Origin: Rebecca billardiae RCC1528
Lineage: Eukaryota; Protista; Haptophyta
Reading direction: 5' to 3'
NCBI GenBank assembly: GCA_965240325.2
Contig: OZ251225.1
Coordinates: 3,534,001 to 3,598,000, forward strand
DNA length: 64,000 nucleotides
The position numbers and the translations under genes were made by a program. The notes beneath the pieces are model-generated. The model was not told where the DNA came from. It saw only the letters and a list, made by a program, of their open reading frames with translations, and ran no database searches. Below, one piece after another: positions 8,456-40,557 of the stretch (positions are counted from its first letter, which is position 1; every line of letters begins with the position of its first letter).

Positions 8456-8517
8456 CGTCGCGAGTCGGACGTCCGCAGCGGCGACGATCTGCGTCCCTCG
8501 CTCGATGACGACTCACG

Positions 8518-9594: not shown

Positions 9595-9656
9595 ACTCAC
9601 GAGTCTCGGCCCAGCCGAGCAGGACACACACCTTTGCCGAGCCACATCTGCGCAGG

Positions 9657-19867: not shown

Positions 19868-22800
19868 TCAATCATCGGCGGTCGCATCACGATTCCCAAC
19901 CACGCGGCGCGCCCAGCCCGCCGGGTCGGTGCGCATCTGCGCCAGCCGCTTGGCGAGCACGTCCTCGTCCGCGCCGTGCGACTGGCGCAGCTTGCTCGCC
20001 GTGCCCGGGCGCGAGCCAGGCCGCAGGCGCGGAGGCGCTGCCGGTGGGATGGCGTCGGTGTCCGGCGTGGGCAGCGGCTGATCGTCGCCGTGGCTCAGCC
20101 GGCTCGCCTTGGGCGAAGGGCTGTGCTGCTGGCTCGCGGGCGTGTAGAGCGTGCGTGCGCCGGGCTGGTGCACGAGCGGCGACGGCTCGCGGCCCTCCTG
20201 CTCGGCGCTCACCCGGATCGAGCGCGACGTCAGGTGGGGCACGGGCGAGGCACGCGCGTCCGCCGCCGCCGCCTTGGCCGCCGCGCCTTGCTCGGCCGCG
20301 GACATCCACCCGTTCACCGCGCGCGAGGCCGCGTGCAGCGTGGCGCCGACCGAGCCGCCGCTGGCCGCCTGGCGCGCCGGGTCGGCGAGCGATGCGCCGC
20401 CGCCGCGGCTCGTCGGACGCGAGCCGGCGCGGTTGTGGTTGCTGAGGCCCGAGTCGTCGCCAAAGTCGTCTTCCGCGTCGAGCAGGACCATCGACGCGCG
20501 CTGCTTGGTTCCCGGCCTGGCGCGCGAGCTGAGGCCGGGGCGCGCCGCACCGCCCCCTCGGGGCGAGTCCGCGTCCTGCCAGCCCGACATGGCGGGAGGC
20601 GGGCCGGGCGTGGTCGGCGCCGACGGCGGCGGCCGTGGCGGCGGCGGCGGGGCGCCGCGCGAGGGCGAGCGGTCTGGCGAGGGCGGCTGGCGCTTGCCCT
20701 CGCTGTCAAAGTCGACGTCCTCGCCGTCCCACTGGGAGATGCTCGACAGCTGGCCGAGCTCGCCGTCGTCGAAGCGCGCGTCCAGACCGCGGCTGCCGAG
20801 CGGCCGCTCGAGGCCCGGCCGGCTGCGCGCCGCCGACCTGCGTCCGTCAGGCCCCTCCGAGCCGCCCGCCATCAGCGAGGCCTGCGCGCGCCGAGGCGTC
20901 GCGCGCACGGCGCTGCGAGCCGTCGTCACCGCGCCGCCCTGCCCGGCGGCACCGCCGTCCGCGCCCGCCTGCTCGCCCTCCGCGTCGTTGGCGCGCGCGC
21001 GCACGACGCGCGTGCCGCCTTTCTTGCTGCTCTTGCCGCCCGGCGGCGGCGGCGGCGTGGGCGTGGTCGGCGAGTGAGCGACCGCGCGCGGCATGCTCTG
21101 CCCGCGCGGCACGGCGCCGCTGCCCGCCGCCCGCGCCGCGTTGGCCTCGGCGCTCGCTGCGTCGAGCCGGCTGTTGGCCGACGCGATCGCCGCCTCGCTC
21201 GGCGCGAGGGGCGACACCATCCCCAGCTCGCGGCGCGGAGGCGGCGGCGGTGGCGCGGGCAGCTCCTGCAGCGGCCGCGGGCCGCCGCCGCCGCCGCCGC
21301 TCGCGCCCGGCTCCGCCTTGGGAGGCGGCGGCGGCGGCGGCTGGCGCTGCGGCGTCACCACCTGCAGGGGCCCTTCGCGGCCGGCCGAGCCCCTGCGCGG
21401 CGCCCGAGGCTGCTCGCCGCGCGCCATGCGCTCCCTCGCCTCGCGCTCGGCGCGCACCGCCGTGGTGGGCCGGCTCGAGACGCGCTCGACGTGTGAGGCG
21501 ACGCGCGCGGCCATGAGCGCGTTGCCGCTCGCCTCGTCGCTCAGCAGCTCGAGGAGCTCGCCGCCCTCGATCAGCTCGCGCCGCCCGAAGATCTCCTCCG
21601 CCTCCTCCTCCTCCTCGCCGCTGTCGCCCCAGTACGAGCTGTTCCGCCCCTCCTCCAGCTCGATCGATCCGGGCACAGGCTGCAGCCGCGAGTGCGCGCC
21701 GTGAAAGGCGCCGCTGCCACCGAGGCGCTTCTTGTCCGTAGGCTGCCGAGGCTTTTTAAACGACGGCGGCGCGGGCGCGACGGGCTCGTTGAGCTCGACA
21801 GGGAGCTGCGGCGGCGTGGTCGGCTCCGGAGGCAGCAGCTCCTCCGACGAGCCGCCAAACGGCACGGGCGAGCGCGCGCGCCGGAAGGACTCGTCCGAGA
21901 ACGTCCCGGGACCGCCCGCGCGCGCCGCCGGCGCCGCGCCGTCCGCGTCGCGCGCCGGCAGCTGCATCGGCAGGCGCGCGCGGCCGTGGCCGAACAGCGG
22001 CGTCGGGTCGTCCGCCTCCGCGCGCTCGTCGCGCCCCTCGCGCCGCGAAGACTCGCGCAGCGACTCGCGCAGCGGGAGCGAGGCGACCGACTCCTCCTCG
22101 AAGGCGGTCGTGTACGCCTGGTGCGACTGCTGAGACGCGGCCGAGTCGCGCCGCGCGCGCAGCAGGCCGCGCACGCCGACGGGCGAGTGCTCAGGCTCGG
22201 CCGCGTCCTGCAGCTGAGCCACGTGCAGCTGGGGAGCCGCGATCGCGAGCGCCGCGCGCGCCGACGGGGCGTCCGCGCTCGGCGCCACGCTCCTCGCGCG
22301 GCTCGCCTCGACCGACGCGGGCAGCGGCCCCAGCTGCGGCCGCGCGCGCTGGCCGTTGGCCGCCAGCTCCGCCCCGAGCGCGGCCAGCTGCGGCTGTGGC
22401 GCGAGCGCGTTCGCGCGGCCGAGCGGCGTCGGGCGCGAGAGCAGGGCCGCGGCCGCGTCGCTCAGAGCGGCCGGGCCCGACGCGCCGAGGGCGGGCGGCG
22501 CGTCGGGCACGGCCGGCGGGCTGACGCGCGCGCCGCCCTCCGCCGCTGCCGTCGGGCTCGTCCCCCGGGCCGGCACGCGGTGCGCTGCGGAGAAGGCGGG
22601 TGGCGGCACCGCCGTGAGCTCGGCGCTGTGTGCCGCGGGCTGCGGCGCGGGCTGCGGCGCGGGCTGCGGCGCGGGCGCCTCGCCCTCGGCGGCGGGCAGC
22701 GCCATGCGCACGCGCTGCACGGGCGGAGGCGCCTTGGCCATGATCGACGACAGCACGGCGGGCGGTGGGCGCGCGGCCAGGAAGGACGGCACCGCCGAGC

Positions 22801-25800
22801 CGGGCGTGGCGCCCGTGGGCGTGGGCGGCGCGACGCGCACGCGCTGCTCGGCGGTGGGCGGCGCGCCGCCGGTGCGGTACAGCGCCTTCTGCACCTCCTC
22901 GTGCACGAGGGCGAGCATCGCCGCCTCCTCCGCGCGCTGCTTCTCCTCCGCCACGCGCCTCTTCTCCTCCGCGCGCGCCTCGGCGGCGGCCGCGGACGGC
23001 TGCTGCGGCGCCTTGCCCGCGCGAGCAGGCGGCGCGCGTGGCGCGGGCTGCTGCTGCGCGCGCTCGTCCGGCGCGGCGCGCGCAGCCCTGAAGCGCGAGC
23101 GCGCCGCCTCCGCGTCGGACCTGGCGGCCGCCATCTGCTCGGCGAGCAAGCTCGCCTGCTCCTCCCACTCCGTCCGCCTCTCGTTGGCCATCACCTCGCG
23201 CTCGACGGCGCGCGCCTGCGCGCGCTCAGCCTCCGCCGCGGCGCGCGCGGCCGCCTCCGCCTCCGCGCGACGGCGCTCCGCCTCGGCGGTGGCGGCCTCC
23301 GACGCTTCGCGCTGTGCGGCCTCGCGCGCGGCCTGGGCCTGCGCGACCGCCGCCTCACGCCGCGCGAGCGCGGCGGCCGCCGCCTCTCTCGCGCGCGTGG
23401 CGGCCTCGGCCGCGGCCGCGGCCTCCGCTCTCTCGCGCCGCACCTGCGCTTCAAACGCGGCAGCTGCCTTTGCGGCGTCGGCCTCGAGCCGGGCGCGCTC
23501 GGCGGCAGCGGCGGCGGCGGCCTTCGCCTCCTCCTCCTCGGCCTGCTGCCGCGCCGCCTCGCGCTTCGCCGCCTCGGCCGCCTCGCGCTCCATCGCGAGA
23601 CGCGCCGCCTCGGCCGCCGCCTCGGCCGCCGCCGCCTCCGCCGCGCGCTTGCGCTCCGCCTCGGCCGCGGCGGCCGCCTTGGCGCGCGCGGCCTCCTGCT
23701 GCCGCTCCGCCTCGGCCGCGGCGCGAGACGCCGCCTCGGCCTCGGCCCTGCGCCGCTCCGCCTCGCCGGCGGCCGCCTCCGAGTGCTGCTGCTGCGCGGT
23801 CGCGCGCGTGCTGTCGGCGAGCGCGATGGCCGCCTCTCGCCGCGCCCGCGCCTCCTCCGCGTCGGCGAGCCTGGCCGCTGCGTCCCGATCGAGCGACTCT
23901 CTGGCCTTGCGCTCGGCGCGCAGCTGCTGAGCGATGGTGACGGCTTCAGCGGTGGCAAGCTCCGCCTCCCGGCGCTGCCGCGCCGCCTCCGCCTCGACTC
24001 GCGCGCGCACCTGCGCCGCCTCCTCCTTCTTGCGCGCCTCGATGGCTCGCGCGGCATCGACAGCCTCCGCGGCCGCACGCGCCGCGTTTGCGGCAGAAGC
24101 CGCAGCACTCCGTTGCTCGGCATGCCGACGCGCCGAGCCGGTCCGGGGCTGGCCTGCGCCCAGGGAGAGCCGAGCAGGGCCAGCAGCCGCTGCTGCCGCC
24201 TCCTGCTGCTGGCGGCTTGCCTCAGCAGCGGCGACGGCTGCCGCCTCCTCCTCAGCCTTGCGCTTGGCCTCGCCGGCGGCAGCGGCTGCCGCCTCCTCCT
24301 CGGCCTTGCGCGTGGCCTGGGTCGCGGCTGCCGCCTCCTCCTCGGCCTTGCGCTTGGCCTCGGCCATGGCTGCCGCCTCCTCCTCAGCCTTGCGCTTGGC
24401 CTCGGCGGCGGCAGCGGCTGCCGCCTGCTCCTCAGCCTTGCGCTTGGCCTCGGCGGCGGCTGCCGCCTCCTCCTCAGCCTTGCGCTTGGCCTCGGCGACG
24501 GCTGCCGCCTCCTCCTCAGCTTTGCGCTTGGCCTCGGCCTCGGCCTCGGCAGCGGCAGCGGCCGCGGCTGCCGCCTCCTCCTCGGCCTTGCGCTTGGCCT
24601 CGGCTGCGGCGGCGGCAGCGGCAGCGGCAGCGGCTGCCGCCTCCTCCTCAGCCTTGCGCTTGGCCTCGGCGGCGGCAGCGGCTGCCGCCTCCTCCTCAGC
24701 CTTGCGCTTGGCCTCGGCGGCGGCCGCGGCTGCCGCCTCCTCCTCAGCCTTGCGCTTGGCCTCGGCGGCGGCAGCGGCTGCCGCCTCCTCCTCAGCTTTG
24801 CGCTTGGCCTCGGCCTCGGCCTCGGCAGCGGCAGCAGCAGCGGCTGCCGCCTCCTCCTCAGCCTTGCGCTTGGCCTCGGCGGCGGCAGCGGCTGCCGCCT
24901 CCTCCTCCGCCTTACGCTTGGCCTCGGCGGCGGCAGCGGCTGCCGCCTCCTCCTCAGCCTTACGCTTGGCCTCGGCCTCGGCAGCGGCAGCGGCTGCCGC
25001 CTCCTCCTCAGCCCTGCGCTTGGCCTCGGCGGCGGCAGCGGCTGCCGCCTCCTCCTCGGCCTTGCGCGTGGCCTGGGCCGCGGCTGCCGCCTCCTCCTCG
25101 GCCTTGCGCTTGGCCTCGGCCATGGCTGCCGCCTCCTCCTCAGCCTTGCGCTTGGCCTCGGCGACGGCGGCGGCTTCAGCTTCCACCTGCTGCTGCCTGC
25201 GCTCCGCCTCCGCGGCGGCAGCGGCGGCAGCTGCGGCCTGCTGCTGCTTGCGCTCCTCCTCAGCTGCCTCAGCTTCGGCGGCCTCTGCCTCCGCAATGAG
25301 GCGCTCTGCCTCCGCAGCGGCGGCAGCAGCTGCTTCGGCCGCAGCCAGCTTGCGCGCTGCTTCTGCAGCTGCTGCCGCGGCGGAGGCCTTTTCAATACTC
25401 TCCGAGCGCTTGAGCCGCCTGCGCTCCTTGGAGGCCTGCTTCTCGATACGCCTGCGCTCGGCGGCAGCTTCTGCCGAGCCCTCGTTGGGCGCAGTCGCAG
25501 CGCTGTCGTCGGGTTCGGGCTTTGCGGCCTGGCTGGTCGCATCGGCCGCAGCTGCGTCGGCCTCGACCTGCTGCGATGGCTGTGCAGCCGCGGGCGCCGA
25601 AGCCGCGGCAGCAGCTGTCTCCGCGGGGGCGGCCGAGCTCAGGGGTGCATCTGGGATCGGCCCCGGAAATGCGTACGATGCGGGCTGGGTTGCCTGTGCC
25701 GTAGCGGACTCCGGAGGTGCTGCAGCAGTCGTTGCGCTGGGAGCAGCCGAGCTTGGCGGAGGTTCTGCGGGCTTTGGGCCTGGGAAGGCGTACGACGCCG

Positions 25801-28800
25801 TCTGCGCGGAGTTGCGCCTGGACTGCACAGCCGGCGGAGGCGCAGTTGTCGAAGGCGGCGCCGCTTGCGGCTGCCCGGGCGCCGCAGCAGGGGCGGCCAC
25901 GACATCCGGCTGCGGTTGGTCGGCCTCGGCAACAGCAGGCGAGGCCGGCTGGTTGCGCTCAGACCCGCCAGCTCCCTCCTGCTGCTGCTTGCCCTCCGCC
26001 ACGGTAGCGCCACCGACCGCGGCTGCCGCCTCCTCCTCAGCCTTGCGCTTGGCCTCGGCCGCGGCTGCCGCCTCCTCCTCAGCCTTGCGCTTGGCCTCGG
26101 CCGCGGCTGCCGCCTCCTCCTCAGCCTTGCGCTTGGCCTCGACGGCGGCAGCGGCTGCCGCCTCCTCCTCCGCCTTGCGCTTGGCCTCGGCCTCGGCCTC
26201 GGCAGCGGCAGCGGCAGCGGCTGCCGCCTCCTCCTCAGCCTTGCGCTTGGCCTCGGCGGCGGCAGCGGCTGCCGCCTCCTCCTCAGCCTTGCGCTTGGCC
26301 TCGGCGGCGGCCGCGGCTGCCGCCTCCTCCTCCGCCTTGCGCTTGGCCTCGGCGGCGGCAGCGGCTGCCGCCTCCTCCTCCGCCTTGCGCTTGGCCTCGG
26401 CCTCGGCCTCGGCAGCGGCAGAGGCAGCGGCTGCCGCCTCCTCCTCAGCTTTGCGCTTGGCCTCGGCCTCGGCCTCGGCAGCGGCAGCGGCAGCGGCTGC
26501 CGCCTCCTCCTCAGCCTTGCGCTTGGCCTCGGCAGCGGCTGCGGCTGCCGCCTCCTCCTCAGCCTTGCGCTTGGCCTCGGCGGCGGCCGCGGCTGCCGCC
26601 TCCTCCTCGGCCTTGCGCTTGGCCTCGGCCTCGGCCTCGGCAGCGGCAGCGGCAGCGGCAGCGGCTGCCGCCTCCTCCTCAGCCTTGCGCTTGGCCTCGG
26701 CGGCGGCAGCGGCTGCCGCCTCCTCCTCAGCCTTGCGCTTTGCCTCAGCGGCAGCGGCTGCCGCCTCCTCCTCAGCCTTGCGCTTGGCCTTGGCAGCGGC
26801 TGCGGCTGCCGCCTCCTCCTCAGCCTTGCGCTTGGCCTCGGCGGCGGCAGCGGCTGCCGCCTCCTCCTCGGCCTTGCGCTCGGCCTCGGCTGCGGCTGCC
26901 GCCTCCTCCTCAGCCTTGCGCTTGGCCTCGGCTGCGGCTGCGGCTGCCGCCTCCTCCTCAGCCTTGCGCTTGGCCTCGGCGGCGGCAGCGGCTGCCGCCT
27001 CCTCCTCAGCCTTGCGCTTGGCCTCGGCGGCGGCTGCGGCTGCCGCCTCCTCCTCAGCCTTGCGCTTGGCCTCGGCCTCAGCCTCGGCAGCGGCAGCGGC
27101 AGCGGCTGCCGCCTCCTCCTCAGCTTTGCGCTTGGCCTCGGCAGCGGCTGCGGCTGCCGCAACCTCCTCAGCCTTGCGCTTGGCCTCGGCGGCGGCAGCG
27201 GCTGCCGCCTCCTCCTCAGCCTTGCGCTGCGCCTCAGCAGCAGGGGCAGCGGCAGTGGCAGCTGCAGCCTGCTGCTGCTTGCGCTCGGCCTCCGCAGCAG
27301 CTTCAGCTGCGGCGGTGGCAGCGGCTGCCTCTGCGAGCATGCGCTCCGCCTCGGCCGCGGCGGCGGCAGCAGTCCTCTCCGCGTCCTGCTTCATGCGCTC
27401 TGCCCAAGCCGCCTTGGTTGCAGCAGCCGCAGCAGCGGCCTCCGCCTGCAGCTTCTGCTGCGCATCAGCGGCAGCAGCAGCCGCCGCCGCCGCTTCTGCT
27501 TCCTTCTGCTGGCGCTGTGCCTCAGCAGCGGCGGTGGCAGCCGCAGCGGCCTCCTCCTGCTGCTTGCGCTCGGCCTCCGCAGCAGCGGCAGCAGCTACCG
27601 CCTCCTCCGCCTGCTTGCGCTTCGTATCGGCAGCGGCGGCTGCTGCGGCCTCCTGCTGCTTGCGCTCCGCCTCGGCAGCGGCGGCGGCGGCCGCGGCCTC
27701 CTGCTGCTTGCGCTCGGCCTCCGCAGCAGCTTCAGCTGCGGCGGTGGCGGCGGCTGCCTCTGCGAGCATGCGCTCCGCCTCGGCCGCGGCGGCCGCGGCT
27801 GCTGCTGCTGCCTCGTGCTGCTTGCGCTCCGCTTCTGCAGCGGCGGCGGCGGCGGCGGCGGCGTCTGCCTCCGCCTGCTGCTTCTGCGCCTCGTCTGCGG
27901 CCGCGGCGGCCGCGGCGGCGGCATCGGCCGCTTGCTGCGTGCGCTGCGCCTCTGCAGCGGCGGCCGCCGCGGCCTCGCCCTGCCGCTTGCGCTCCGCCTC
28001 GGCAGCGGCGGCCGCAGCGGCGGCGGCTGCCTCCTCCTGCTGCTTGCGCCTCGCCTCAGCGGCGGCGGCGGCTGCAGCCTCCTGCTGCTTGCGCTCCGCT
28101 TCGGCCGCGGCGGCGGCAGCCTTCGCAGCTGCCGCCTCCTGATGCTTGAGCTCCGCCTCCGCAGCGGCATCAGCGGCAGCAGTGGCAGCAGCCGCCTGTG
28201 CGATCATTCGCTCGGCCTCAGCAGTAGCGGCCGCTGCTGCTGCCGCGGCATCCTGCTTCAGGCGCTCCGCCTCGGCCGCAGCGGCAGCAGCGGCGGCAGC
28301 AATGCGCTCCGCTTGCTGCTTGCTCTCCGCGTCAGCTGTGGCGGCGGCGGCAGCCGCTGCTGCTGCCTCCTGCTGCGTGCGCGCTGCTTCAGCAGCGGTG
28401 GCTGCAGCGGCAGCTGCCGCCTCCTCCTCCTGCTTGCGCTGCGCCTCGGCCGCAGAGGCAGCGGCTGCGGCTTCTGCCGCTGCTTGCTGCTTGCTCTCCG
28501 CCTCGGCGGCCACCGCGGCGGCTGCAGCTTCTCCCTGCCGCTTGCGCTCCGCCTCAGCAGCGGCGGCGGCGGCGGCTGCCTCCTCCTGCTGCTTGCGCTC
28601 CGCCTCGGCGGCTGCGGTGGCGGCAGCGGCAGCAGCTGCCTCGAGCTGTGCCTCGGCAGCCGCGGCTGCAGCCGCTGCCGCCTCCTGCTCCTTGCGCTCC
28701 GCCTCGGCGGCTTTCACGGCGGCGGCGGCGGCCGCGGCCTCCTGCTGCTTGCGCTCGGCCTCCGCAGCAGCTTCAGCTGCGGCGGTGGCGGCGGCTGCCT

Positions 28801-31800
28801 CTGCGAGCATGCGCTCCGCCTCGGCCGCGGCGGCCGCGGCTGCTGCTGCCACCTCGTGCTGCTTGCGCTCCGCTTCTGCAGCGGCGGCGGCGGCGGCGGC
28901 GGCGTCTGCCTCCGCCTGCTGCTTCTGCGCCTCGTCTGCGGCAGCGGCGGCCGCGGCGGCGGCATCGGCCGCTTGCTGCGTGCGCTGCGCCTCTGCAGCG
29001 GCGGCCGCCGCGGCCTCGCCCTGCCGCTTGCGCTCCTCCTCGGCGGCGGCGGCCGCAGCGGCGGCGGCTGCCTCCTCCTGCTGCTTGCGCCTCGCCTCAG
29101 CGGCGGCGGCGGCTGCAGCCTCCTGCTGCTTGCGCTCCGCTTCGGCAGCGGCGGCGGCGGCGACGGCCGCGGCAGCTTCCTGTTGCATGCGCTCCGCCTC
29201 GGCAGCGGCTTCGGCGGCTGCCTTGGCGGCCGCTGCCTCCTGCAGCATTCGCTCTGCCTCGGCCGCGGCGGCCGCGGCGGCTGCTGCCGCCTCCTGCTGC
29301 TTGCGCTCAGCCTCGGCGGCGGCAGCGGCGGCAGCCGCAGCAGCTGCCTCTGCTTGCTGCTTCTGCTCGGCATCGGCAGCAGAGGCGGCAGCAACGGCAG
29401 CGGCAGCGGCCACCTCCTGCTTCTTCTGCGCCTCGGCCGCGGCAGCTGCGGCCGCGGCTGCTACCTCCTCCTGCTGCTTACGCTCCGCCTCGGCAGCCGC
29501 GGCAGCGGCGGCGGCTGCTGCTGCTGCTTGCTGCTTTTCCTCTGCCGCGGCGGCGGCGGCGGCAGCGGCTGCCTCGCCCTCTCGTTTTCGCTCTGCCTCA
29601 GCATCGGCAGCAACCGCAGCAGCCTCCTCCTGCTGCTTGCGCTCAGCCTCAGCGGCGGCAGCAGCGGCGGCGGCTGCTGCCTCCTCCTCAGCTTTGCGCT
29701 TGGCCTCTGCCTCGGCAGCGGCAGCGGCAGCGGCCGCGGCGGCAGCTGCCGCCTCCTCCTCAGCTTTGCGCTTGGCCTCGGCGGCGGCAGCGGCTGCCGC
29801 CTCCTCCTCCGCCTTGCGCTTGGCCTCGGCCTCGGCCTCGGCAGCGGCAGCGGCCGCGGCTGCCGCCTCCTCCTCAGCCTTGCGCTTGGCCTCGGCGGCG
29901 GCGGCGGCCTCGGCAGCGGCAGCGGCTGCGGCTGCCGCCTCCTCCTCAGCCTTGCGCTTGGCCTCGGCTGCGGCGGCGGCCTCGGCAGCGGCAGCGGCCG
30001 CGGCTGCCGCCTCCTCCTCAGCCTTGCGCTTGGCCTCGGCCTCGGCAGCGGCAGCGGCCACGGCTGCCGCCTCCTCCTCAGCCTTGCGCGTGGCCTCGGC
30101 GGCTGCCGCGGCTGCCGCCTCCTCCTCAGCCTTGCGCTTGGCCTCGGCTGCGGCCTCGGCCTCGGCAGCGGCAGCGGCCGCGGCTGCCGCCTCCTCCTCA
30201 GCCTTGCGCCTGGCCTCGGCCTCGGCCTCGGCAGCGGCAGTGGCCGCGGCTGCCGCCTCCTCCTCGGCCTTGCGCGTGGCCTGGGCCGCGGCTGCCGCCT
30301 CCTCCTCGGCCTTGCGCTTGGCCTCGGCGGCGGCAGCGGCTGCCGCCTCCTCCTCAGCCTTGCGCTTGGCCTCGGCGGCGGCAGCGGCTGCCGCCTCCTC
30401 CTCCGCCTTGCGCTTGGCCTCGGCGGCGGCGCTGCTCTCGTGCTGAGCCTCGCCATCGGAAGCCCCCACCGAGCCAGCAGCACTCGGGTCGGCGGGCAGG
30501 GGCCCGTCCGCACCCTGCGGCGCCTCCGACCGTGCCGCGGCCGGCGGGTGGGCGGCAGTTGCACCCTCGAGCGGAGGGGCGCTGGCAAGCTCGAGGTGGG
30601 AGGGGCTCGACGCAGAGTCCGCGGCCGGTGCCACTGGCGCGGCGGCAGGTGCATCGACGCCGACGGCGGGTACGGCCGCGGCTGCGGGGGCGTGCGCGAC
30701 AGCGCCATCCTCACCTGCGTCGGCAGCCGGGGCAGCACCGCCCGCGGGCGACGCGGCCGGCGCGGCCACAGCTGCCGGCGCGTCGCCGGTCGCTTCGCCG
30801 GGCGCAGCGGGTGTTGGCCGCGCGTCCGTCGCCGCCGGCGCTGCCGATGGCACCGCCGGCGACGCGACGCCGTCACCCGCGCTCGGCATGGCTGCAGCGC
30901 TCGCTCCAGCCTCCGCAGCCGGCGCTGCCGACGCTGTCTTCGCGGCGGAGGCAGCAGCGCGGGCGGCCGCGTCGGCTTCGGCCGCGACGGGCTGCTCGGT
31001 GCTCGCCGCGCGCGCTGTGTCGGCGTTGGGCGCGTCCTTGGCCTTCTCAGCCTCGTACAGCGCGCGGTGCTCGACCCAGACCGGGTGGTCCCACTGCGTG
31101 CTCCCGTCGAGCGCGTTGTGGTAGTACGCCTCGCCCGTGGCCGAGTCGGCCACCTCCTGCCACCCCTCGGGCATCGGCGCCAGCCGCGCGCGGCGCGTGA
31201 GCCACTGGAAGCGATGGCGCTCGGCGGGTGGGATGCCGAGCCACTCAGCGTACTCGACGTCGGCCTCGCGCTCGCGGGCGTCGGCCGCGCGCGCGGCGCG
31301 GCCGCGCGCCGCCGCCTGCATGCGCACGGCCGCGCCGCGCTGCGCCTCGCGCGTGCGCGCGGTGCGCGCCTGCCGGCCGCGCGCCGCCGCCTGCACTCGC
31401 GCCGCGGCGCCGTGCTGTGCCGGATCGAGCGAGCGCTGGCGCGTGGCGCGCGCGACGCGCGCGTGCTCCCGCGCGACGCGCCCGCGGTGCGCGGCCTGGA
31501 TGCGCGCCGCCGCCGACTTGCTCGACGTGTCGGCCGCCTCCGCCTTGGCCGCCTCGTACAGCGCGCGGTGCTCGACCCACACCGGGTGGTCCCACTGCGT
31601 GCGCCCGTCGAGCGCGTGGTGGTAGTACGCCTCACCGCTGCCCTCGTCCAGCACCTCCTCCCAGCCCTCGGGCATCGGCGTGTCCAGCGCCTTCTTCGCG
31701 ACCCAGTAGAACTCGGGCTCCTCGATCCCGAGCCACAGCGCGTACTCGAGCACCTCGGAGCCGCCCGCCGCGATGGCCGCGCGCTCGCGGCCCGCGCGCG

Positions 31801-34800
31801 CGCGGCCGGCGCGCCCGCGCTGCGCCGCCTGCACGCGCGTGGCGGCGGCGCGCTGCGCGCGCGCGCGCGCCCTCCGCGCCTCGAGCTCGCGCGCGTCGGT
31901 GAGCAGCTGCTCGTGCCGCTCCCTGCGCGGGTGCTCTCGCTGCGTGTGCACGCTGCCATCGGCCTGCGTGCGCGCGTACGCGCTGCCGCCCTTCGGAGCG
32001 TCCGGCGCGCGCGACCAGCCGTCGGGCAGCGGCGCGGCCGGGTCCTCCGCCTCACGTGCGGCGTGCGCCACCCACCACAGCCGCTCCGCCTCCGCCTCGC
32101 CGATGCCGAGCGCTTCGACGTACGGCGCGGCCGCCTTGCGCTCGGCGCGCGCGCGCGTCTTGGCGCGAGCGTTCCGCTGCAGGGTGAGCGCGGCGAACTG
32201 CCGTGCGCGGCGGCGGGTGGCCGCCTCGCGCGCGCGGCGGCCGCGCTCGGCGGCCTGGATGACCGGCGCCGCCTCGCGCCGCCGCGCCGCCGCTTGGCGC
32301 GCCGCGCGCCCGCGCGCCGCTGTCTGCACGCGCGTCGCGGCGCCGCGCTCGCGCGCGCGCTGCGCCTCGGCGCGCGCGGCCGCCGCCTTGGCCACGCCGA
32401 TGCGCGCGCGCGCCTGGATCACCGTGGCGGCCTCGTGCCTGCGCTGCAGCGCCGCCGCCTCCTCCGCCTTGGCCGCGTCGTACAGCGCGCGGTGCTCGAG
32501 CCAGACGGGGTGGTCCCACTGCGTGCTGCCGTCGATGGTGTTGTGGTAGTACGTGTCGCCCGTGTCCGGGTCGGACACCTGCTCCCAGCCGGGCGGCGGC
32601 GTCGTGTGCCGCGCGCGCTTCGCGATCCAGAACAGGTGCGGCTCGTCGGCCGGGATGCCGAGCCACGAGACGTACTGCTGCAGCACCACGGCCTCGCGCC
32701 GCCTGAAGAGCAGCGCGCGCCAGCTGCGCTGCAGCCGCCTCGCGTGGCCCGGCTTGGCTCGCTCGAGCGAGGCGAAGGCGCGCGCCTGCCGGCCGCGCGC
32801 GTGCCGCTGCACCACGACCGAGGCGGCGGCGAGCCGCGCGAGCCGCGCGCGGGTGAAGCGGCCGCGCTGCAGCGAGCCAATGCGCGAGGCCGCGTGCCGC
32901 GCGCGCGCGAGCTCGGCGCGCGGCGCCACGCCCGCGCCCACGCGCCCGAGCAGCGAGGCGGCGGCGTGCCGCTTCACGTGGTCGACGACGCGCGCGCCGA
33001 CCGACACCTCGCCCACGCGGATCGTGTAGATGTAGTCCTCGCCCAGCGACGTGTCGAACTCCATCAGCCGCGCGTGCACGCGCAGCTCGATCTCGACCGA
33101 GACGGGCACGCGCACAGCCACCGCGAGCGACTGGCGGCGCAGCGCCGCCACGCCCATCCGCCGGCGCACCGCTCGCCGCACGGAGACGGCGTCGACGCGC
33201 GGCCGCCGCCCCAGCGCGCCCGCCGCCCACGTGACGCCGGCGCGGCGGAGCGCGGCGGCGCGCGCCGCGGCGCGCGGCTTGCGCGCAAGGTAGGCGCGCG
33301 CGCGCGCCGCATCCCGCTCCCACGACTCGCCCGCGCTGCGCGCCGCCGAGGCGAACGAGACGAGATTGCGCCGCGCGCCCGCGGGGAAGGCGTAGCAGAT
33401 CAGCACGGACGTGGGCAGCGAGCCCGGGTGCGGAGGGGGCGGCGCGAGCGGCCACGCGCCACCGGGGGGCGGCGCGGGGTGCGGCTCGGCGAAGACCGAG
33501 CGCCACGCTCGTCCCGTGCGCTCGATGGCGCGCAGCCGCGCGCGCTCGCGCGCCCAGCGCGCCTCGGCCCACGCGTGCCGCGTGAGCACGCGCCGCTCGC
33601 GCGCCTGCCGCCGCAGCCGCTTGCGCTCAGCCGGGTGGAACTGCGGGTGCAGCCTGCGCCAGAAGAGCTGCAGCTGCACGAGCCGCGCGATCCGCGCGCT
33701 CGCCGGCGCGCGGATCGAGTTCACCAGCGCGCCCGCCGCGTAGCGACCGACGAGCGCGCCGCCGCCGCCGCCGCCGGTGTCGGCCCGCCCGCCGGCGCGC
33801 AGCGCGGCGAGCTCGCGCAGCCTGCCCTCCACGCCCGACTCGCGCACCTCCTGCATCCGCCGCTCGTCGCCGCTCGTGAGCGGGTCGGCGAGCACGTTCT
33901 GCAGAGCGGCGGACGCGTAGAACTGCACGCCCTCGTCGTCCGAGTGCACCAGCCGCAGCAGCAGCTCAAAGCAGCGCGTCGGCCGCACGAGGTCGTCGCC
34001 GCCGTAGTTCACGGCGTTGGTCACGACGGCGAGGCCGGCGCACAGGATCGTGGGCTCGGCGTGCGCGGCGTGCACGTCGAGCAGGTCGACGAGCGGGCCC
34101 ATCAGCTCGATCGCGCGCATGATGGCGACGACGTGCGCGCCCCAGCTCGCGCCCGCGACGAGGTGGCCGAGCTCGACGATCACGGCGCCGATCTCCTCGA
34201 GCAGCAGCTGCAGCGGCGCGCGGCCCGAGCGCGCGCGCACGAGCTTGTGCGACGCGTCGGCGGCGAGCTGGATCGCGTCGGCGTGCGCGAGGAGCGTGGC
34301 GTACAGCCGCTCGAACGCGAGCTCGCCCGCCAGCCGGCGCGCGAGCACCATGCGCCACACCGCCTGGATGCGCGTGGCCGCGGCCGCCATCTCCTCCGCG
34401 CTGTGCGGCGGCGGCGCGGGCGGCTCGGGCGGCATCGGCGGCAGCGGCGGCGGCGCCTCGGCGACCGAGCGCGGTGGCCCGGTGGGCTGCGACGAGCGCC
34501 GCCCGCTGGCCGGCGGCGCCGGCCCGCGCGCCGAGCGCAGCCGGTTGAAGATGGATGCTGGGCGGGCGGTCTTCCACCCGCCAGAGGATCGCGCGGGCTG
34601 GCGGCGCTCGGGGGCGGAGCCGCGGTCCGACGCGCGCAGGTCGTCCGGCTCGTCGTCCGCCTGGCCGTGCTGCAGCAGCTCCTGCGCGCGCGCGAGCGCC
34701 GCGCGCGCGGCCTCGGCCGTGCGCGCGTCCGCCGCGCCCTGCGCCGTCAGTCTCTCCAGCGCGGTGTGCGCGCCTGCGCGCACGAGCTGCTGCGCGTGCC

Positions 34801-35500
34801 GCGAGGATTTGAGCATGTTCTGCAGGCCGGCGGCCGCGAGGTACCGCGCCACCTCGTCGGACGAGGAGAGCGACTCGAGCACCAGCGTGAAGCCGCCGTT
34901 CTTGTGCACCTCCCTCCGCGCGCCCATGCCCGCGAGGTTGCAGATCAGCGCGAGCCCGGCGCGCGTCAGCTTGCGCTGCGGCTCGAGGTGCGACTCGTTC
35001 GCCGCCGCGCGCGTGAAGAGCACGATGGGCTCGACGATATGCGCGTCCAAAATCGTCGTGATGGCCTGCGCGGCGCGGAACGCGCGCGGCACGGACGCGG
35101 GCCGGGGCGGCGCGCGAGGGGAGCGCTCAGCGCACACTCGGCGCGAGCCGGGCGCGGCCGCGCGCCGCGCGCAGCGCGAGACAAGGGCGGCATGGCGCGG
35201 GGCGGTGGGCGCCCGCGCAGCACGGGGTGGTAGACCACACTCCGACGCGCCGCGTCGTGCCGCGCGCACCTGGCTCGCCGGCTCGCCCTCGAGCCCGCTG
35301 AGCGTGCTCGTGAGCTCGCGGATCACCCGCTCGACATCGGCCGGGCTCGAGCGGCGGGAGGCGACGAGATCAACGAGCTCGGCGCACTGCCTCGCGACGG
35401 TGACAGGCGAGTATGCCGGGCTTCGGCTCGCGGAGCTAGGCTCGACAGGCCCGCGAGAGCCCCGCGAGCCCCGGCGAGTTGTTGTTTCGGCTGCCATCAT
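19868..35500 (-). CDS. Giant (~5,140 aa) protein: ARM-like repeats, ~12 IQ motifs, four CEP164-type WW modules, very long Ala/Glu/Lys helical rod, Pro-rich disordered tail; probable intron 35066-35269
   Basis: Uninterrupted 15.6-kb frame from MMAAETT (ATG 35500). WW domains such as PPGWEQVSDPDTGDTYYHNTIDGSTQWDHP; IQ motifs such as TRIQAVWRMVLARR and RVQAAARGRQAR; ARM-like YLAAAGLQNM and FYASAALQNV. A CAG|GTGCGC...GCGCAG|GCC segment interrupts otherwise ordered sequence. Confidence 0.85.
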   Translation of the reverse strand: MMAAETTTRRGSRGSRGPVEPSSASRSPAYSPVTVARQCAELVDLVASRRSSPADVERVIRELTSTLSGLEGEPASQVRAARRGASECGLPPRAARAPTAPRHAALVSRCARRAAAPGSRRVCAERSPRAPPRPASVPRAFRAAQAITTILDAHIVEPIVLFTRAAANESHLEPQRKLTRAGLALICNLAGMGARREVHKNGGFTLVLESLSSSDEVARYLAAAGLQNMLKSSRHAQQLVRAGAHTALERLTAQGAADARTAEAARAALARAQELLQHGQADDEPDDLRASDRGSAPERRQPARSSGGWKTARPASIFNRLRSARGPAPPASGRRSSQPTGPPRSVAEAPPPLPPMPPEPPAPPPHSAEEMAAAATRIQAVWRMVLARRLAGELAFERLYATLLAHADAIQLAADASHKLVRARSGRAPLQLLLEEIGAVIVELGHLVAGASWGAHVVAIMRAIELMGPLVDLLDVHAAHAEPTILCAGLAVVTNAVNYGGDDLVRPTRCFELLLRLVHSDDEGVQFYASAALQNVLADPLTSGDERRMQEVRESGVEGRLRELAALRAGGRADTGGGGGGALVGRYAAGALVNSIRAPASARIARLVQLQLFWRRLHPQFHPAERKRLRRQARERRVLTRHAWAEARWARERARLRAIERTGRAWRSVFAEPHPAPPPGGAWPLAPPPPHPGSLPTSVLICYAFPAGARRNLVSFASAARSAGESWERDAARARAYLARKPRAAARAAALRRAGVTWAAGALGRRPRVDAVSVRRAVRRRMGVAALRRQSLAVAVRVPVSVEIELRVHARLMEFDTSLGEDYIYTIRVGEVSVGARVVDHVKRHAAASLLGRVGAGVAPRAELARARHAASRIGSLQRGRFTRARLARLAAASVVVQRHARGRQARAFASLERAKPGHARRLQRSWRALLFRRREAVVLQQYVSWLGIPADEPHLFWIAKRARHTTPPPGWEQVSDPDTGDTYYHNTIDGSTQWDHPVWLEHRALYDAAKAEEAAALQRRHEAATVIQARARIGVAKAAAARAEAQRARERGAATRVQTAARGRAARQAAARRREAAPVIQAAERGRRAREAATRRRARQFAALTLQRNARAKTRARAERKAAAPYVEALGIGEAEAERLWWVAHAAREAEDPAAPLPDGWSRAPDAPKGGSAYARTQADGSVHTQREHPRRERHEQLLTDARELEARRARARAQRAAATRVQAAQRGRAGRARAGRERAAIAAGGSEVLEYALWLGIEEPEFYWVAKKALDTPMPEGWEEVLDEGSGEAYYHHALDGRTQWDHPVWVEHRALYEAAKAEAADTSSKSAAARIQAAHRGRVAREHARVARATRQRSLDPAQHGAAARVQAAARGRQARTARTREAQRGAAVRMQAAARGRAARAADAREREADVEYAEWLGIPPAERHRFQWLTRRARLAPMPEGWQEVADSATGEAYYHNALDGSTQWDHPVWVEHRALYEAEKAKDAPNADTARAASTEQPVAAEADAAARAAASAAKTASAAPAAEAGASAAAMPSAGDGVASPAVPSAAPAATDARPTPAAPGEATGDAPAAVAAPAASPAGGAAPAADAGEDGAVAHAPAAAAVPAVGVDAPAAAPVAPAADSASSPSHLELASAPPLEGATAAHPPAAARSEAPQGADGPLPADPSAAGSVGASDGEAQHESSAAAEAKRKAEEEAAAAAAAEAKRKAEEEAAAAAAAEAKRKAEEEAAAAAQATRKAEEEAAAAATAAAEAEAEARRKAEEEAAAAAAAAAEAEAAAEAKRKAEEEAAAAAAAEATRKAEEEAAAVAAAAAEAEAKRKAEEEAAAAAAAAAEAAAAAEAKRKAEEEAAAAAAAAAEAAAAAEAKRKAEEEAAAAAAAAAEAEAEAKRKAEEEAAAAAAAEAKRKAEEEAAAAAAAAAAAAAEAEAKRKAEEEAAAAAAAAAAEAERKQQEEAAAVAADAEAERKREGEAAAAAAAAAAEEKQQAAAAAAAAAAAAEAERKQQEEVAAAAAAAAAEAQKKQEVAAAAAVAAASAADAEQKQQAEAAAAAAAAAAAEAERKQQEAAAAAAAAAAEAERMLQEAAAAKAAAEAAAEAERMQQEAAAAVAAAAAAEAERKQQEAAAAAAAEARRKQQEEAAAAAAAAAAEEERKRQGEAAAAAAAEAQRTQQAADAAAAAAAAADEAQKQQAEADAAAAAAAAAEAERKQHEVAAAAAAAAAEAERMLAEAAAATAAAEAAAEAERKQQEAAAAAAAVKAAEAERKEQEAAAAAAAAAEAQLEAAAAAAATAAAEAERKQQEEAAAAAAAAEAERKRQGEAAAAAVAAEAESKQQAAAEAAAAASAAEAQRKQEEEAAAAAAATAAEAARTQQEAAAAAAAAATADAESKQQAERIAAAAAAAAAEAERLKQDAAAAAAAATAEAERMIAQAAAATAAADAAAEAELKHQEAAAAKAAAAAAEAERKQQEAAAAAAAEARRKQQEEAAAAAAAAAAEAERKRQGEAAAAAAAEAQRTQQAADAAAAAAAAADEAQKQQAEADAAAAAAAAAEAERKQHEAAAAAAAAAAEAERMLAEAAAATAAAEAAAEAERKQQEAAAAAAAAEAERKQQEAAAAAAADTKRKQAEEAVAAAAAAEAERKQQEEAAAAATAAAEAQRQQKEAEAAAAAAAAADAQQKLQAEAAAAAAATKAAWAERMKQDAERTAAAAAAEAERMLAEAAAATAAAEAAAEAERKQQQAAAATAAAPAAEAQRKAEEEAAAAAAAEAKRKAEEVAAAAAAAEAKRKAEEEAAAAAAAAAEAEAEAKRKAEEEAAAAAAAEAKRKAEEEAAAAAAAEAKRKAEEEAAAAAAAEAKRKAEEEAAAAAEAERKAEEEAAAAAAAEAKRKAEEEAAAAAAAKAKRKAEEEAAAAAAEAKRKAEEEAAAAAAAEAKRKAEEEAAAAAAAAAAAEAEAEAKRKAEEEAAAAAAAEAKRKAEEEAAAAAAAEAKRKAEEEAAAAAAAAAEAEAEAKRKAEEEAAAAASAAAEAEAEAKRKAEEEAAAAAAAEAKRKAEEEAAAAAAAEAKRKAEEEAAAAAAAEAKRKAEEEAAAAAAAAAEAEAEAKRKAEEEAAAAAAVEAKRKAEEEAAAAAEAKRKAEEEAAAAAEAKRKAEEEAAAAVGGATVAEGKQQQEGAGGSERNQPASPAVAEADQPQPDVVAAPAAAPGQPQAAPPSTTAPPPAVQSRRNSAQTASYAFPGPKPAEPPPSSAAPSATTAAAPPESATAQATQPASYAFPGPIPDAPLSSAAPAETAAAAASAPAAAQPSQQVEADAAAADATSQAAKPEPDDSAATAPNEGSAEAAAERRRIEKQASKERRRLKRSESIEKASAAAAAAEAARKLAAAEAAAAAAAEAERLIAEAEAAEAEAAEEERKQQQAAAAAAAAAEAERRQQQVEAEAAAVAEAKRKAEEEAAAMAEAKRKAEEEAAAAAQATRKAEEEAAAAAAAEAKRRAEEEAAAAAAAEAEAKRKAEEEAAAAAAAEAKRKAEEEAAAAAAAEAKRKAEEEAAAAAAAAAEAEAEAKRKAEEEAAAAAAAEAKRKAEEEAAAAAAAEAKRKAEEEAAAAAAAEAKRKAEEEAAAAAAAAAAAAAEAKRKAEEEAAAAAAAAAEAEAEAKRKAEEEAAAVAEAKRKAEEEAAAAAEAKRKAEEQAAAAAAAEAKRKAEEEAAAMAEAKRKAEEEAAAATQATRKAEEEAAAAAAGEAKRKAEEEAAAVAAAEASRQQQEAAAAAAGPARLSLGAGQPRTGSARRHAEQRSAAASAANAARAAAEAVDAARAIEARKKEEAAQVRARVEAEAARQRREAELATAEAVTIAQQLRAERKARESLDRDAAARLADAEEARARREAAIALADSTRATAQQQHSEAAAGEAERRRAEAEAASRAAAEAERQQEAARAKAAAAAEAERKRAAEAAAAEAAAEAARLAMEREAAEAAKREAARQQAEEEEAKAAAAAAAERARLEADAAKAAAAFEAQVRRERAEAAAAAEAATRAREAAAAALARREAAVAQAQAAREAAQREASEAATAEAERRRAEAEAAARAAAEAERAQARAVEREVMANERRTEWEEQASLLAEQMAAARSDAEAARSRFRAARAAPDERAQQQPAPRAPPARAGKAPQQPSAAAAEARAEEKRRVAEEKQRAEEAAMLALVHEEVQKALYRTGGAPPTAEQRVRVAPPTPTGATPGSAVPSFLAARPPPAVLSSIMAKAPPPVQRVRMALPAAEGEAPAPQPAPQPAPQPAAHSAELTAVPPPAFSAAHRVPARGTSPTAAAEGGARVSPPAVPDAPPALGASGPAALSDAAAALLSRPTPLGRANALAPQPQLAALGAELAANGQRARPQLGPLPASVEASRARSVAPSADAPSARAALAIAAPQLHVAQLQDAAEPEHSPVGVRGLLRARRDSAASQQSHQAYTTAFEEESVASLPLRESLRESSRREGRDERAEADDPTPLFGHGRARLPMQLPARDADGAAPAARAGGPGTFSDESFRRARSPVPFGGSSEELLPPEPTTPPQLPVELNEPVAPAPPSFKKPRQPTDKKRLGGSGAFHGAHSRLQPVPGSIELEEGRNSSYWGDSGEEEEEAEEIFGRRELIEGGELLELLSDEASGNALMAARVASHVERVSSRPTTAVRAEREARERMARGEQPRAPRRGSAGREGPLQVVTPQRQPPPPPPPKAEPGASGGGGGGPRPLQELPAPPPPPPRRELGMVSPLAPSEAAIASANSRLDAASAEANAARAAGSGAVPRGQSMPRAVAHSPTTPTPPPPPGGKSSKKGGTRVVRARANDAEGEQAGADGGAAGQGGAVTTARSAVRATPRRAQASLMAGGSEGPDGRRSAARSRPGLERPLGSRGLDARFDDGELGQLSSISQWDGEDVDFDSEGKRQPPSPDRSPSRGAPPPPPRPPPSAPTTPGPPPAMSGWQDADSPRGGGAARPGLSSRARPGTKQRASMVLLDAEDDFGDDSGLSNHNRAGSRPTSRGGGASLADPARQAASGGSVGATLHAASRAVNGWMSAAEQGAAAKAAAADARASPVPHLTSRSIRVSAEQEGREPSPLVHQPGARTLYTPASQQHSPSPKASRLSHGDDQPLPTPDTDAIPPAAPPRLRPGSRPGTASKLRQSHGADEDVLAKRLAQMRTDPAGWARRVVGNRDATADD
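23090..30425 (-). repeat. Coding low-complexity repeat array (EAKRKAEEEAAAAAAA / EAERKQQEAAAAAAA) with internal block duplications
   Basis: Dozens of GCCTTGCGCTTGGCCTCGGC..GCTGCCGCCTCCTCCTC units on the + strand. A block near 27700-28110 recurs about 1 kb away near 28740-29150. Confidence 0.92.
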
Positions 35501-36047
35501 GGCGGCCTCCCGCGGAGCCGGGTGGCTCTCACCCAACAGACGGCCGGGAACAACGACGCGGGTCGCTGACTATGATAATGGCAAGTGGACGTGAGTATAA
35601 AAGTAAAGCCGCTCCGTAAGCTCTTGGGTACGCTCGTGATTAATGGGCGGTATTTTGGGAGCGATCTCCGCTAGGCGTCCAGCCAATCTCGATTTCCCGT
35701 TTTTGTTTGCATCTCGCTTCGTCGCGCGCGGATTTTGTAACGTCATGTACTTGATGACGATGTAAACCACAGCGGTTTAGTGACCCTTCAGGTACTGAGA
35801 CAGTCACAGCAGTTCTCTAAGAAGCATCTAGCATCTAGACCTGTCCTATCGCACTCCTACTGCGCGGCGCTTGCCCGTGCTGCGGAGTCAGGAGTGCCCA
35901 TCGATTTCGGTGAGATCGTCCAGTGCCCGTGGGCAGTGGCAGATGCGGCCGCGCTGCCACAATCGGGCGCTTGGCGCGCTCGCCATCCGTAAGTGCGCCG
36001 GCTGGCGACAGACAGTTCACACTCCCGGCACGGAATCTGTCGGCGGA

Positions 36048-37535: not shown

Positions 37536-38203
37536 GACGCCGGGAGCGACGTCACACCGCTTCACCCCGACTGCGCCAACCGGCAGCCCACTACAGTTTA
37601 CTAAGAATAAGAGCCACACCGTGAGCAACGCGGCAGCCATCGGATGCTGATCGTCATCGCGTGCACGGTTCAAAATAGAAATGAGAGCAGCTACAGGACG
37701 CATCAGCCTCTCGGCTCCTCTCTACCAGGGTCAAGGCGCAGCGCGTTGCTACTCCAGCGGCGTCAGCACGCACACACACCTACTTTCGGGCGTGCAACGG
37801 GCAGCAAGTGCAAGCTGTCGCGTTTTACTGCCGTGCAGACCGCGCGTCGAGGACAAGGTGGCAGAGACGTCAGACGACGGATGACAGCATGCCGAAGCGG
37901 CACATGCCCTTTCAATTGGTGTCTACTTGCCCGGCATCCACCCCGACGGACGATCTGGCGATGACGCCGGGACTTTGAGCGCTCACAGTAGGCGAGGTGC
38001 GTGGGGCGACGAACCAGGCGCCCGACTGGGAAAGCGAAAAGCTGGGGCACAACCTTGCCTGATGAACCCTCTTCCGTCACTTGCCGCCGCCCGCCGAATA
38101 GATTAATAAGGTAATAACTGTGCTTCGACTCCTTCATCATCAGAAAGCACAGAAAGCACTGCCACCAACCCTGGCGAGCCAGCTGCGCAAGCGGCGCTAC
38201 CGG

Positions 38204-40382: not shown

Positions 40383-40557
40383 CTACCGGCACCAGATCTC
40401 GCGTCATGAGATCATAGTAGTGTCTAAAGATTACTACTGCAACCACAACTTCTTGGTTAGTCAATCAGCTTATCCGGTAAGCCGACTGCGCTCTTGATCT
40501 CGCGCCGCACGCACCTCGCCTTCCACGCTGGCACACTCAACCAACCTCGTGGCACGC

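Follow-up and report, generated by a model that had tools for sequence, protein, structure and literature searches.

CEP164-type WW modules alternating with IQ motifs in the predicted product of a very large open reading frame from the haptophyte Rebecca billardiae

The window analysed here is a stretch of 64,000 nucleotides from the haptophyte Rebecca billardiae RCC1528 (GenBank assembly GCA_965240325.2, contig OZ251225.1, positions 3,534,001 to 3,598,000 of the forward strand; locus G000:C7:3534001-3598000), whose genome of 72 Mb comprises 41 contigs with a G+C content of 65-80%. On the minus strand of the window, an open reading frame (ORF) at 19868..35536 encodes a predicted protein in which four helix-bundle WW modules of the type found in the N-terminal domain (NTD) of CEP164, three canonical and one degenerate, alternate with IQ motifs. 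We consider it about 60% probable that this ORF represents a single giant gene, apparently without introns, whose product is a multivalent adaptor or tether; the N-terminal ~1,500 residues of the product appear to be the conserved functional part. The CEP164 NTD is the TTBK2 docking site that starts cilium assembly, it is mutated in nephronophthisis, and it has been studied as a one-off.

Results and discussion

The WW modules and their predicted fold

The IQ/WW array spans residues 880-1510 of the predicted protein (31007..32899; this and all other features of the protein are on the minus strand) and has the order IQ-IQ-M1-four IQ-M2-IQ-M3-three IQ-M4, where M1 to M4 are the WW modules. A profile of the module, calculated from an alignment of 16 modules (A1), places four copies: M1 (residues 952-1027, 32456..32683, 103.0 bits), M2 (residues 1136-1221, 31874..32131), M3 (residues 1261-1336, 31529..31756, 99.6 bits) and M4 (residues 1425-1502, 31031..31264). 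M1, M3 and M4 are canonical and correspond to the three stretches over which Pfam WW scores 106.9 bits in total, while the degenerate M2 is recognised by the profile and by its match to M4 (43% identity over query residues 3-69, E 2.8e-5). The arrangement of three canonical modules and a degenerate one, separated by IQ motifs, had been proposed in the initial annotation for 31040-32690, essentially the same span as the 31031-32683 delimited by the profile.

In CEP164 the WW domain is inserted in a three-helix bundle, and the bundle is required for folding (Rosa e Silva et al. 2022, PMC8752127). Sequence comparisons and structure prediction agree that the modules of the R. billardiae protein are of this extended kind. 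In a phmmer search of all PDB sequences with a 551-residue region of the protein, the CEP164 NTD ranks first (7nwj, E 1.4e-10), and the alignment of 73 residues (query 478-550 to 7nwj 34-105) covers both flanking helices. The 16-module profile matches CEP164 over positions 2-77 with 77.7 bits; for other WW domains of solved structure (ITCH, NEDD4L, YAP, PIN1 etc.) the match is limited to the core positions ~29-65. The AlphaFold2 (AF2) model of M4, the copy chosen for modelling, has a mean predicted confidence (pLDDT) of 95.2, with predicted helices at residues 2-8, 20-28 and 61-76 and three strands between them. In a Foldseek search with this model the five best PDB matches are all CEP164 NTDs (7nwj, 7o06, 7o0s, 7o3b), which superimpose with a template-modelling (TM) score of 0.71-0.82 and a root-mean-square deviation of 1.7-2.6 A over 75 columns at 37% identity; the remaining matches align merely 32-38 columns. 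The proposal that the helix-WW-helix signature is that of the CEP164 NTD is therefore borne out by phmmer, the profile and the predicted structure alike, and the reading as generic WW domains fails, since both flanks align to the CEP164 NTD. From these comparisons the module is predicted to have the CEP164-NTD type of fold.

Residues of the fold and of the binding grooves

The CEP164 NTD is stabilised by P59, W62, H86, P87 and R93; it contacts TTBK2 via the XP groove (Y73, W84) and the XP2 groove (F75, F77), and the F77A substitution strongly reduces TTBK2 binding (PMC8752127). M1, M3 and M4 read P.P.GW ... WDHP ... EHRALY, with the Arg of the last motif aligned to R93, and they keep the equivalents of P59, W62, Y73, Y74, W84, H86, P87 and R93. 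The set of stabilising residues is thus complete in these three copies, and so is the XP groove (equivalents of Y73 and W84). M2 retains the equivalents of P59, W62, H86 and P87; its second Trp and one of its two paired Tyr are lost (in CEP164 numbering W84 is replaced by R, Y74 by A and R93 by E), and there is an insertion before the WW domain.

The XP2 groove is replaced in all three canonical modules: the positions of F75 and F77 are occupied by His and Thr in M1, and by His and Ala in M3 and M4. Because the XP2 groove is changed and F77A is known to weaken TTBK2 binding, TTBK2 is not transferable as a ligand, and the TTBK2-type binding implied in the initial annotation is not supported. 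Judging from the aligned residues, the fold can be carried over from CEP164, whereas the ligand cannot be assumed.

IQ motifs between the modules

The linkers between the modules are Arg/Ala-rich predicted helices with 1-4 IQ motifs each, and the sequence that precedes every module is such an Arg/Ala-rich IQ helix. Seven motifs conform to the strict pattern [FILVM]Qxxx[RK]Gxxx[RK] (residues 909, 1070, 1093, 1235, 1346, 1381 and 1406), three are looser (residues 390, 935 and 1040), and another one, at residue 1117, was read by eye. The total of 11 IQ-like motifs in the protein, 10 of them inside the array, is close to the count of ~12 given previously. Chance occurrence due to the Arg/Ala-rich composition was considered and rejected, as shuffling of the linkers yields on average 0.01 strict motifs (maximum 2) versus the 7 observed. 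Adjacent motifs are often 23-26 residues apart; tandem IQ motifs are usually spaced by ~23-25 residues, and 23-26 is the spacing of light-chain sites in myosins. Pfam IQ (PF00612) scores 16.6 bits in this protein, under the cut-off of 20.3, and 116-124 bits in three of the related tandem-module proteins described below (P0033, P0100 and P0156).

Orthologues and the N-terminal region

The closest public relatives of the gene are found in the pavlovophyte haptophyte Diacronema lutheri (JAGTXO010000006.1, locus L001 ~6650-14620). A second orthologue, P0044, is a single ORF of 2,360 residues from run SRR30872635; no poly(A) was found at the ends of its contig (L010), and it cannot be called a transcript. 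Both orthologues are 2.4-2.7 thousand residues long. The Diacronema sequence comprises, in this order, ARM-like block A, an IQ motif with ARM-like block B, a small conserved block, four modules, a short Ala/Glu stretch and a long disordered tail, and its modules are canonical, degenerate, canonical and canonical, as in the R. billardiae protein. P0044 has three modules alternating with IQ motifs, none of them degenerate, and the same blocks at 38-56% identity. M1, M3 and M4 are mutually 54-64% identical versus 37-50% identity to their positional counterparts, and this higher identity within one protein suggests that they have been homogenised or re-duplicated later.

The public Diacronema gene models of this region are wrong: the N-terminal part has been merged into the model of an upstream DEAD helicase, and KFE25_000713 (524 residues) fuses module fragments with a downstream DDE transposase-like piece.

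The N-terminal region shared by the orthologues begins with ARM-like block A (residues 157-260, 34757..35068), which is colinear with Diacronema and P0044 and 38-41% identical to them. It is followed by a Pro-rich linker (residues 355-384, 34385..34474), which includes PPPLPPMPPEPPAPPP and has a poly-Pro counterpart at the same place in Diacronema; this linker could be a possible WW ligand. The first IQ motif (residues 385-402) and ARM-like block B (residues ~403-570) together occupy 33827..34384 and are 53-56% identical to the orthologues. Pfam reports IQ at residues 385-401 and Arm at residues 523-548 (E 0.006, 17.1 bits), each under the cut-off; the Arm match in P0044, with 22.3 bits, is over it. 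In the AF2 model of residues 385-960, obtained with a 3-sequence alignment, the only confident part is a helical repeat at residues 385-550 (pLDDT 65-92). Its structural matches are ARM/HEAT proteins (beta-catenin, Vac8, Armc8, designed armadillo proteins, WAPL) with Z-scores of 12-16, none of which stands out, at a level common for helical repeats. ARM-like repeats had been noted upstream of the modules; the sub-threshold Pfam match, the one above the cut-off in P0044 and the ARM/HEAT-like helical model lend them weak support.

A small conserved block lies at residues 810-880 (32897..33109; 43-46% identity to the orthologues). It reads ...ELRVHARLMEF...YTIRVGE...VVD... and is kept in all three orthologues, that is, including the R. 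billardiae protein; it has no family match, and its AF2 pLDDT is below 50, as for the IQ helices.

The word-index search with the whole protein of 5,222 residues retrieved nothing, the 2,360 residues of P0044 lying below 0.55x of the query length. With an N-terminal piece of 1,700 residues the search retrieves P0044, and with a piece of 571 residues (940-1510) a Diacronema fragment. These searches covered up to 8,000 candidates, among which Ala/Arg-rich words prevailed, and the absence of further orthologues from them is weak evidence.

Rods, tail and C-terminal motif

C-terminal to the array, the protein contains long repeat regions. Rod 1 (residues ~1760-3100, 26237..30259) consists of Ala/Glu/Lys/Gln tandem repeats of the AEAKRKAEEEAAAAAAA and AEAERKQQEAAAAAAA types, with 57% Ala, nearly no Pro and Gly, and 1-4% hydrophobic residues. 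A Pro/Ser/Gln-rich spacer (residues 3100-3330) separates it from rod 2 (residues ~3330-3760, 24257..25549), which is built of AEAKRKAEEE repeats and leads into a charged Ala/Glu/Arg helical segment with no simple repeat (residues ~3760-4100, 23237..24259). Over both rods Ala makes up 55-60%, far over typical ER/K domains, Pro and Gly are close to zero and hydrophobic residues amount to 0-4%; there are 0.07-0.24 acid-base pairs at i/i+4 per residue and 46 copies of KRKAEEE. On this composition, long single alpha-helices are the probable structure of the ~1,800 residues of Ala/Glu/Lys repeats, which would extend over as much as ~270 nm if helical throughout.

All 24 tandem-repeat rows detected in 24189-30481 have a period that is a multiple of 3, in the range 42-180 nt. 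Repeat blocks in the same part of the window are up to 95% identical to each other, which suggests that they expanded recently and with the frame preserved. Since the orthologues have just a short Ala/Glu stretch and no long rod, the giant size of the protein appears to be due to a recent lineage-specific expansion of the repeats.

The remaining residues, ~4100-5222 (19871..23239), form a predicted disordered tail rich in Pro, Ser, Gly and Arg, with poly-Pro tracts at residues 4733, 4760, 4826 and 4963-4977. Together with the Pro-rich linker near the N-terminus, the tail may offer candidate ligands to the WW modules of the protein itself, either in the same chain or in another one. The tail also contains the short motif HAASRAVNGWM (residues 5068-5078, 20303..20335), which belongs to the pattern H-x-A-S/A-x-A-V/I-N-G-W that each of the three orthologues has about 110-150 residues before its C-terminus. 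Its E-values taken singly are 0.035 and 0.089, and its weight comes from the shared position, which argues that the tail belongs to the same gene as the modules. Pfam recognised no family in the C-terminal 3,522 residues.

The open frame and its neighbourhood

The ORF at 19868..35536 contains 5,222 codons and a stop counted from the first start codon after the preceding stop, or 5,210 codons from the first ATG, at 35500; these counts replace the earlier figure of 5,100 residues. The gene model is a single exon, and the gene looks like one intronless unit. Because very GC-rich DNA yields long ORFs by chance, the frame was tested by the G+C content of codon positions. In this frame the G+C content of the third position (GC3) is 0.89-0.97 at residues 1-1500 and 0.93-0.96 at residues 3900-5222, i.e. 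the coding signal lies in the same frame at both ends. An ORF of 4,513 residues on the plus strand over the same DNA was considered as the true gene and rejected, as the codon-position GC signal fits the minus frame.

The gene is flanked by a TauD/gamma-butyrobetaine-hydroxylase (GBBH)-like dioxygenase gene upstream (36048-37703, minus strand) and a gene for an RRM protein downstream (16911-18983, minus strand), both recognised by Pfam. These unrelated genes on both flanks also count in favour of a single gene. There is no synteny with the Diacronema lutheri locus at the flanking genes, where a DEAD helicase lies upstream. Taken together, the same-frame GC3, the repeat periods, the unrelated flanking genes and the colinear orthologues indirectly support a single giant gene at 19868-35536.

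Farther along the window, a second giant ORF of 4,783 residues is located on the plus strand (40549-54900) and has no Pfam family at E<=0.01. The window ends with a fragment of a copia-type retroelement polyprotein (60135-63920, minus strand; RVT_2 and a retroviral SH3-like domain), located in a stretch of lower G+C content (54-60%).

Other proteins carrying the module

A search of the R. billardiae genome with M4 revealed at least 8 other genes with a full-length module (L002-L009, at C10:3158368, C7:3056608, C12:1336162, C34:1021069, C13:352314, C14:354165, C21:231951 and C32:700311, respectively). All of them have a single module without an IQ array, and in most the second Trp is replaced (e.g. 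...SMLKHP, ...SSRQHP). The real CEP164 orthologue is probably among these genes. Paralogues of CEP164 are known from other protists: there are three in trypanosomes, which have no TTBK2 orthologue, and several in ciliates (PMC7833213).

When 1.84 billion cluster representatives were searched with the profile, 12,788 proteins matched at E<=1e-3, a number that takes in classical WW domains. The best 150 of the 12,788 were re-scored together with the cluster members fetched with them; in this set 58 proteins have at least 2 full modules and 16 have at least 3, of which 7 also have at least 3 IQ-like motifs. Examples of tandem layouts, with M for a full module and q for an IQ-like motif, are those of P0033 from Palpitomonas bilix (A0A7S3DK31; four modules followed by 24 IQ-like motifs, MMMMq24), P0026 from Cyanophora paradoxa (MMqqMMq7) and P0156 from Mesostigma viride (Mv13201; MMqqq..Mq8), and tandem WW modules with IQ motifs are likewise found in P0029 and P0100 from MMETSP or metagenome data. 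All of these proteins are unnamed, being annotated as "hypothetical" or "WW domain-containing". The named sources of tandem modules (Palpitomonas, Cyanophora, Mesostigma, Gloeochaete, Apiculatamorpha and a fish) are flagellates or animals, and as an Atlas lead, clusters combining WW and IQ are commonest in Oomycota. The statement of the initial annotation that the module occurs once per protein, and the uniqueness it implied, therefore do not hold, given the other genes of this genome and the tandem arrays with IQ motifs in several unrelated flagellates. We found no paper on the combination of WW, IQ and CEP164 or flagella, or on a haptonema proteome; most subscription journals were outside the literature covered, and "undescribed" is thus provisional.

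The fish protein, XP_063349196.1 from Pelmatolapia mariae (P0042/P0158, 467 residues), is annotated as "NEDD4-like isoform X6" and contains three full CEP164-type modules and no HECT domain. It also gives weak Pfam matches to HTH, homeodomain and Tc5-transposase DNA-binding families on the helical flanks of the modules, and its public name looks wrong.

Proposed role and alternative explanations

In the adaptor or tether that we propose, the IQ helices would be loaded with light chains of the calmodulin family, by analogy with myosin necks, and form a stiff beam that spaces the modules. IQ motifs of the "complete" IQxxxRGxxxR type typically bind apo-calmodulin. As most of the motifs are of this type, Ca2+ would modulate the occupancy or stiffness of the beam rather than create occupancy. 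Because the XP groove and the fold-stabilising residues are kept, M1, M3 and M4 should bind proline-rich peptides, so that three binding sites would be on display, and because the XP2 groove is changed, their specificity would differ from that of the CEP164-TTBK2 pair; M2 would be a structural spacer. The ARM-like domains and the conserved C-terminal motif could anchor the two ends, with the rod setting the distance between them. We give a location at the basal body or the flagellar roots a probability of roughly one in three at most; by analogy it is plausible because the characterised carriers of the module are basal-body proteins and the named tandem carriers have flagellate stages. A role in the haptonema and regulation by Ca2+ are speculative.

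Several observations weigh against a single large adaptor or tether of this kind. The N-terminal beta-hairpin of CEP164 (residues 7-14, with D10/Q11), which contributes to and completes the TTBK2 binding site (PMC8752127), has no visible counterpart in our alignments, which begin at CEP164 residue ~33. In the Diacronema locus L001, of which only the pieces between stops served as input to the tools, the IQ/WW array is interrupted by two in-frame stops (TAG at 9530, TGA at 9842), and in view of these the family may be dispensable or decaying in that species. Light-chain binding and the single-alpha-helix rod are predicted from sequence patterns, all members of the tandem family are known here as sequences alone, and the link to flagellates comes from about eight named sources and not from a systematic profile. 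Finally, the GC3 drops to 0.72-0.80 in the Ala/Glu/Lys repeats (GC1 about 0.9), the long repeats have no counterpart in the orthologues, and an open frame in such GC-rich DNA is weak evidence for a gene, the plus strand being open over the same DNA for the 4,513 residues mentioned above. These last points, together with the proneness of long tandem arrays to assembly error, would also fit an ORF that is partly an artefact, i.e. an N-terminal ARM/IQ/WW protein of ~1,500-1,760 residues and a separate C-terminal gene, joined by a non-coding or mis-assembled GC-rich satellite that is open by chance. We hold this to be very improbable, since no repeat period departs from a multiple of 3, the same frame is found on either side of 6 kb of repeats, the repeat gives a regular charged helix-forming peptide in this frame only, and both orthologues run in one frame from the modules through the short Ala/Glu stretch to the disordered tail with the NGW motif.

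The identity of the best structural match raises the question whether the gene is simply the orthologue of CEP164 in this alga, encoding a protein of the distal appendages or transition fibres with a multiplied NTD for the recruitment of a TTBK2-like kinase. The CEP164 NTD is the best match of solved structure by both sequence and predicted fold, the fold-stabilising residues are kept, and protists do have several CEP164 paralogues (PMC7833213); yet the modules are not N-terminal, being placed at residues 952-1502 behind ARM-like domains, nothing like the coiled coil or the C-terminal region of CEP164 was found, other residues stand in place of F75 and F77, and the genome contains single-module genes, some of them closer to CEP164 in the helix after the WW domain (HPLDEHYQNLY in L004). 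Moreover, trypanosomes have CEP164 paralogues without TTBK2 (PMC7833213), so the module does not imply the partner, and we regard orthology to CEP164 as very improbable. We also rate as rather unlikely a scaffold that has nothing to do with cilia, for instance a spindle, cytoskeletal, nuclear or trafficking protein. The CEP164-type WW would then be an ancient all-purpose form of the WW domain, and the IQ and ARM parts would be analogous to ASPM-like proteins. This reading would agree with the Atlas leads for residues 380-640 (ASPM 0.90, IQCB1 0.84 and plant CH+IQ+Arm proteins), with the frequency of the module among the 12,788 proteins (a number that includes classical WW domains), with its many gene contexts in this genome, and with the lack of any cilium-specific domain in the Pfam search of the whole protein. 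However, neither a CH nor an ASH domain was found, and an Atlas score of less than 0.9 provides no more than a lead. The extended module has been characterised only in CEP164 and the trypanosome CEP164A-C, all of them basal-body proteins (PMC8752127, PMC7833213), and the named carriers of tandem modules all come from organisms with flagellate stages.

Extending the adaptor or tether hypothesis to the other carriers, one may tentatively imagine the tandem CEP164-type-WW/IQ proteins of pavlovophytes, Palpitomonas, glaucophytes, Mesostigma and marine metagenomes as an old and so far unrecognised class of docking platforms that are loaded with calmodulin-family proteins and reside at the basal body, the transition fibres or the flagellar roots. 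Its extreme form would then be the giant protein of the pavlovophytes, with a ~270-nm rod spanning two structures, e.g. from the basal body to the haptonema base or the nucleus. We consider this wider scenario unlikely as it stands.

Significance

In several deep eukaryotic lineages the same helix-bundle WW unit is used repeatedly within one protein, together with calmodulin-type sites. If the protein is located at the basal body or flagellum, it provides naturally occurring forms of the domain in which the second groove differs, useful for the study of ligand specificity, and an entry point to the Ca2+-dependent behaviour of the haptophyte flagellar apparatus; if the docking-platform scenario were true, the kinase-recruiting domain of CEP164 would be one survivor of a larger family of multivalent ciliary adaptors. 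If the protein is non-ciliary, the fold is a general variant of the WW domain, and a match to it is not to be read as "CEP164-like function". Either way annotation practice is affected, as a protist protein cannot be called a CEP164 orthologue on the strength of a match to the CEP164 NTD.

Comparison with known systems

In CEP164 the module occurs once, at the N-terminus, and precedes long coiled coils and a region at the C-terminal end that targets the centriole. The R. billardiae protein has four modules in the middle of the chain, behind ARM-like domains, and the CEP164 coiled coils are unrelated to its ARM-like blocks, IQ motifs and Ala/Glu/Lys rod; no similarity to CEP164 outside the module was found in any search (Pfam, PDB phmmer, word-index). 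With ASPM and IQCB1 it shares an IQ motif of the IQxxWR type directly before an ARM-like solenoid (Atlas scores 0.84-0.92, to be taken as leads only), but it differs from them in the absence of CH and ASH domains, and there is no match at the sequence level. The array and the rod resemble the lever arms of myosins VI, VIIa and X, in which IQ motifs 23-26 residues apart are followed by a charged E/K/R helix-forming segment. In contrast to the myosins, the R. billardiae protein has no motor domain, its IQ helices are interrupted by WW modules, and its rod is far longer and dominated by Ala.

Close parallels are found in the tandem-module proteins of other flagellates. P0033, P0026, P0156, P0029 and P0100 combine 2-4 full modules with 9-24 IQ-like motifs in one protein, as is the case here. 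However, their modules are arranged in adjacent pairs or fours with long IQ arrays after them, whereas in the R. billardiae protein modules and IQ clusters alternate one by one, and they have neither an ARM-like N-terminus nor a giant rod. As the first 950 residues match nothing in these proteins, the architecture of ARM-like blocks with strictly alternating IQ motifs and WW modules is lineage-specific, and it has so far been seen only in pavlovophyte-like algae. The family defined by this architecture forms part of a larger set of unnamed proteins from flagellate protists that combine tandem CEP164-type WW modules with IQ motifs.

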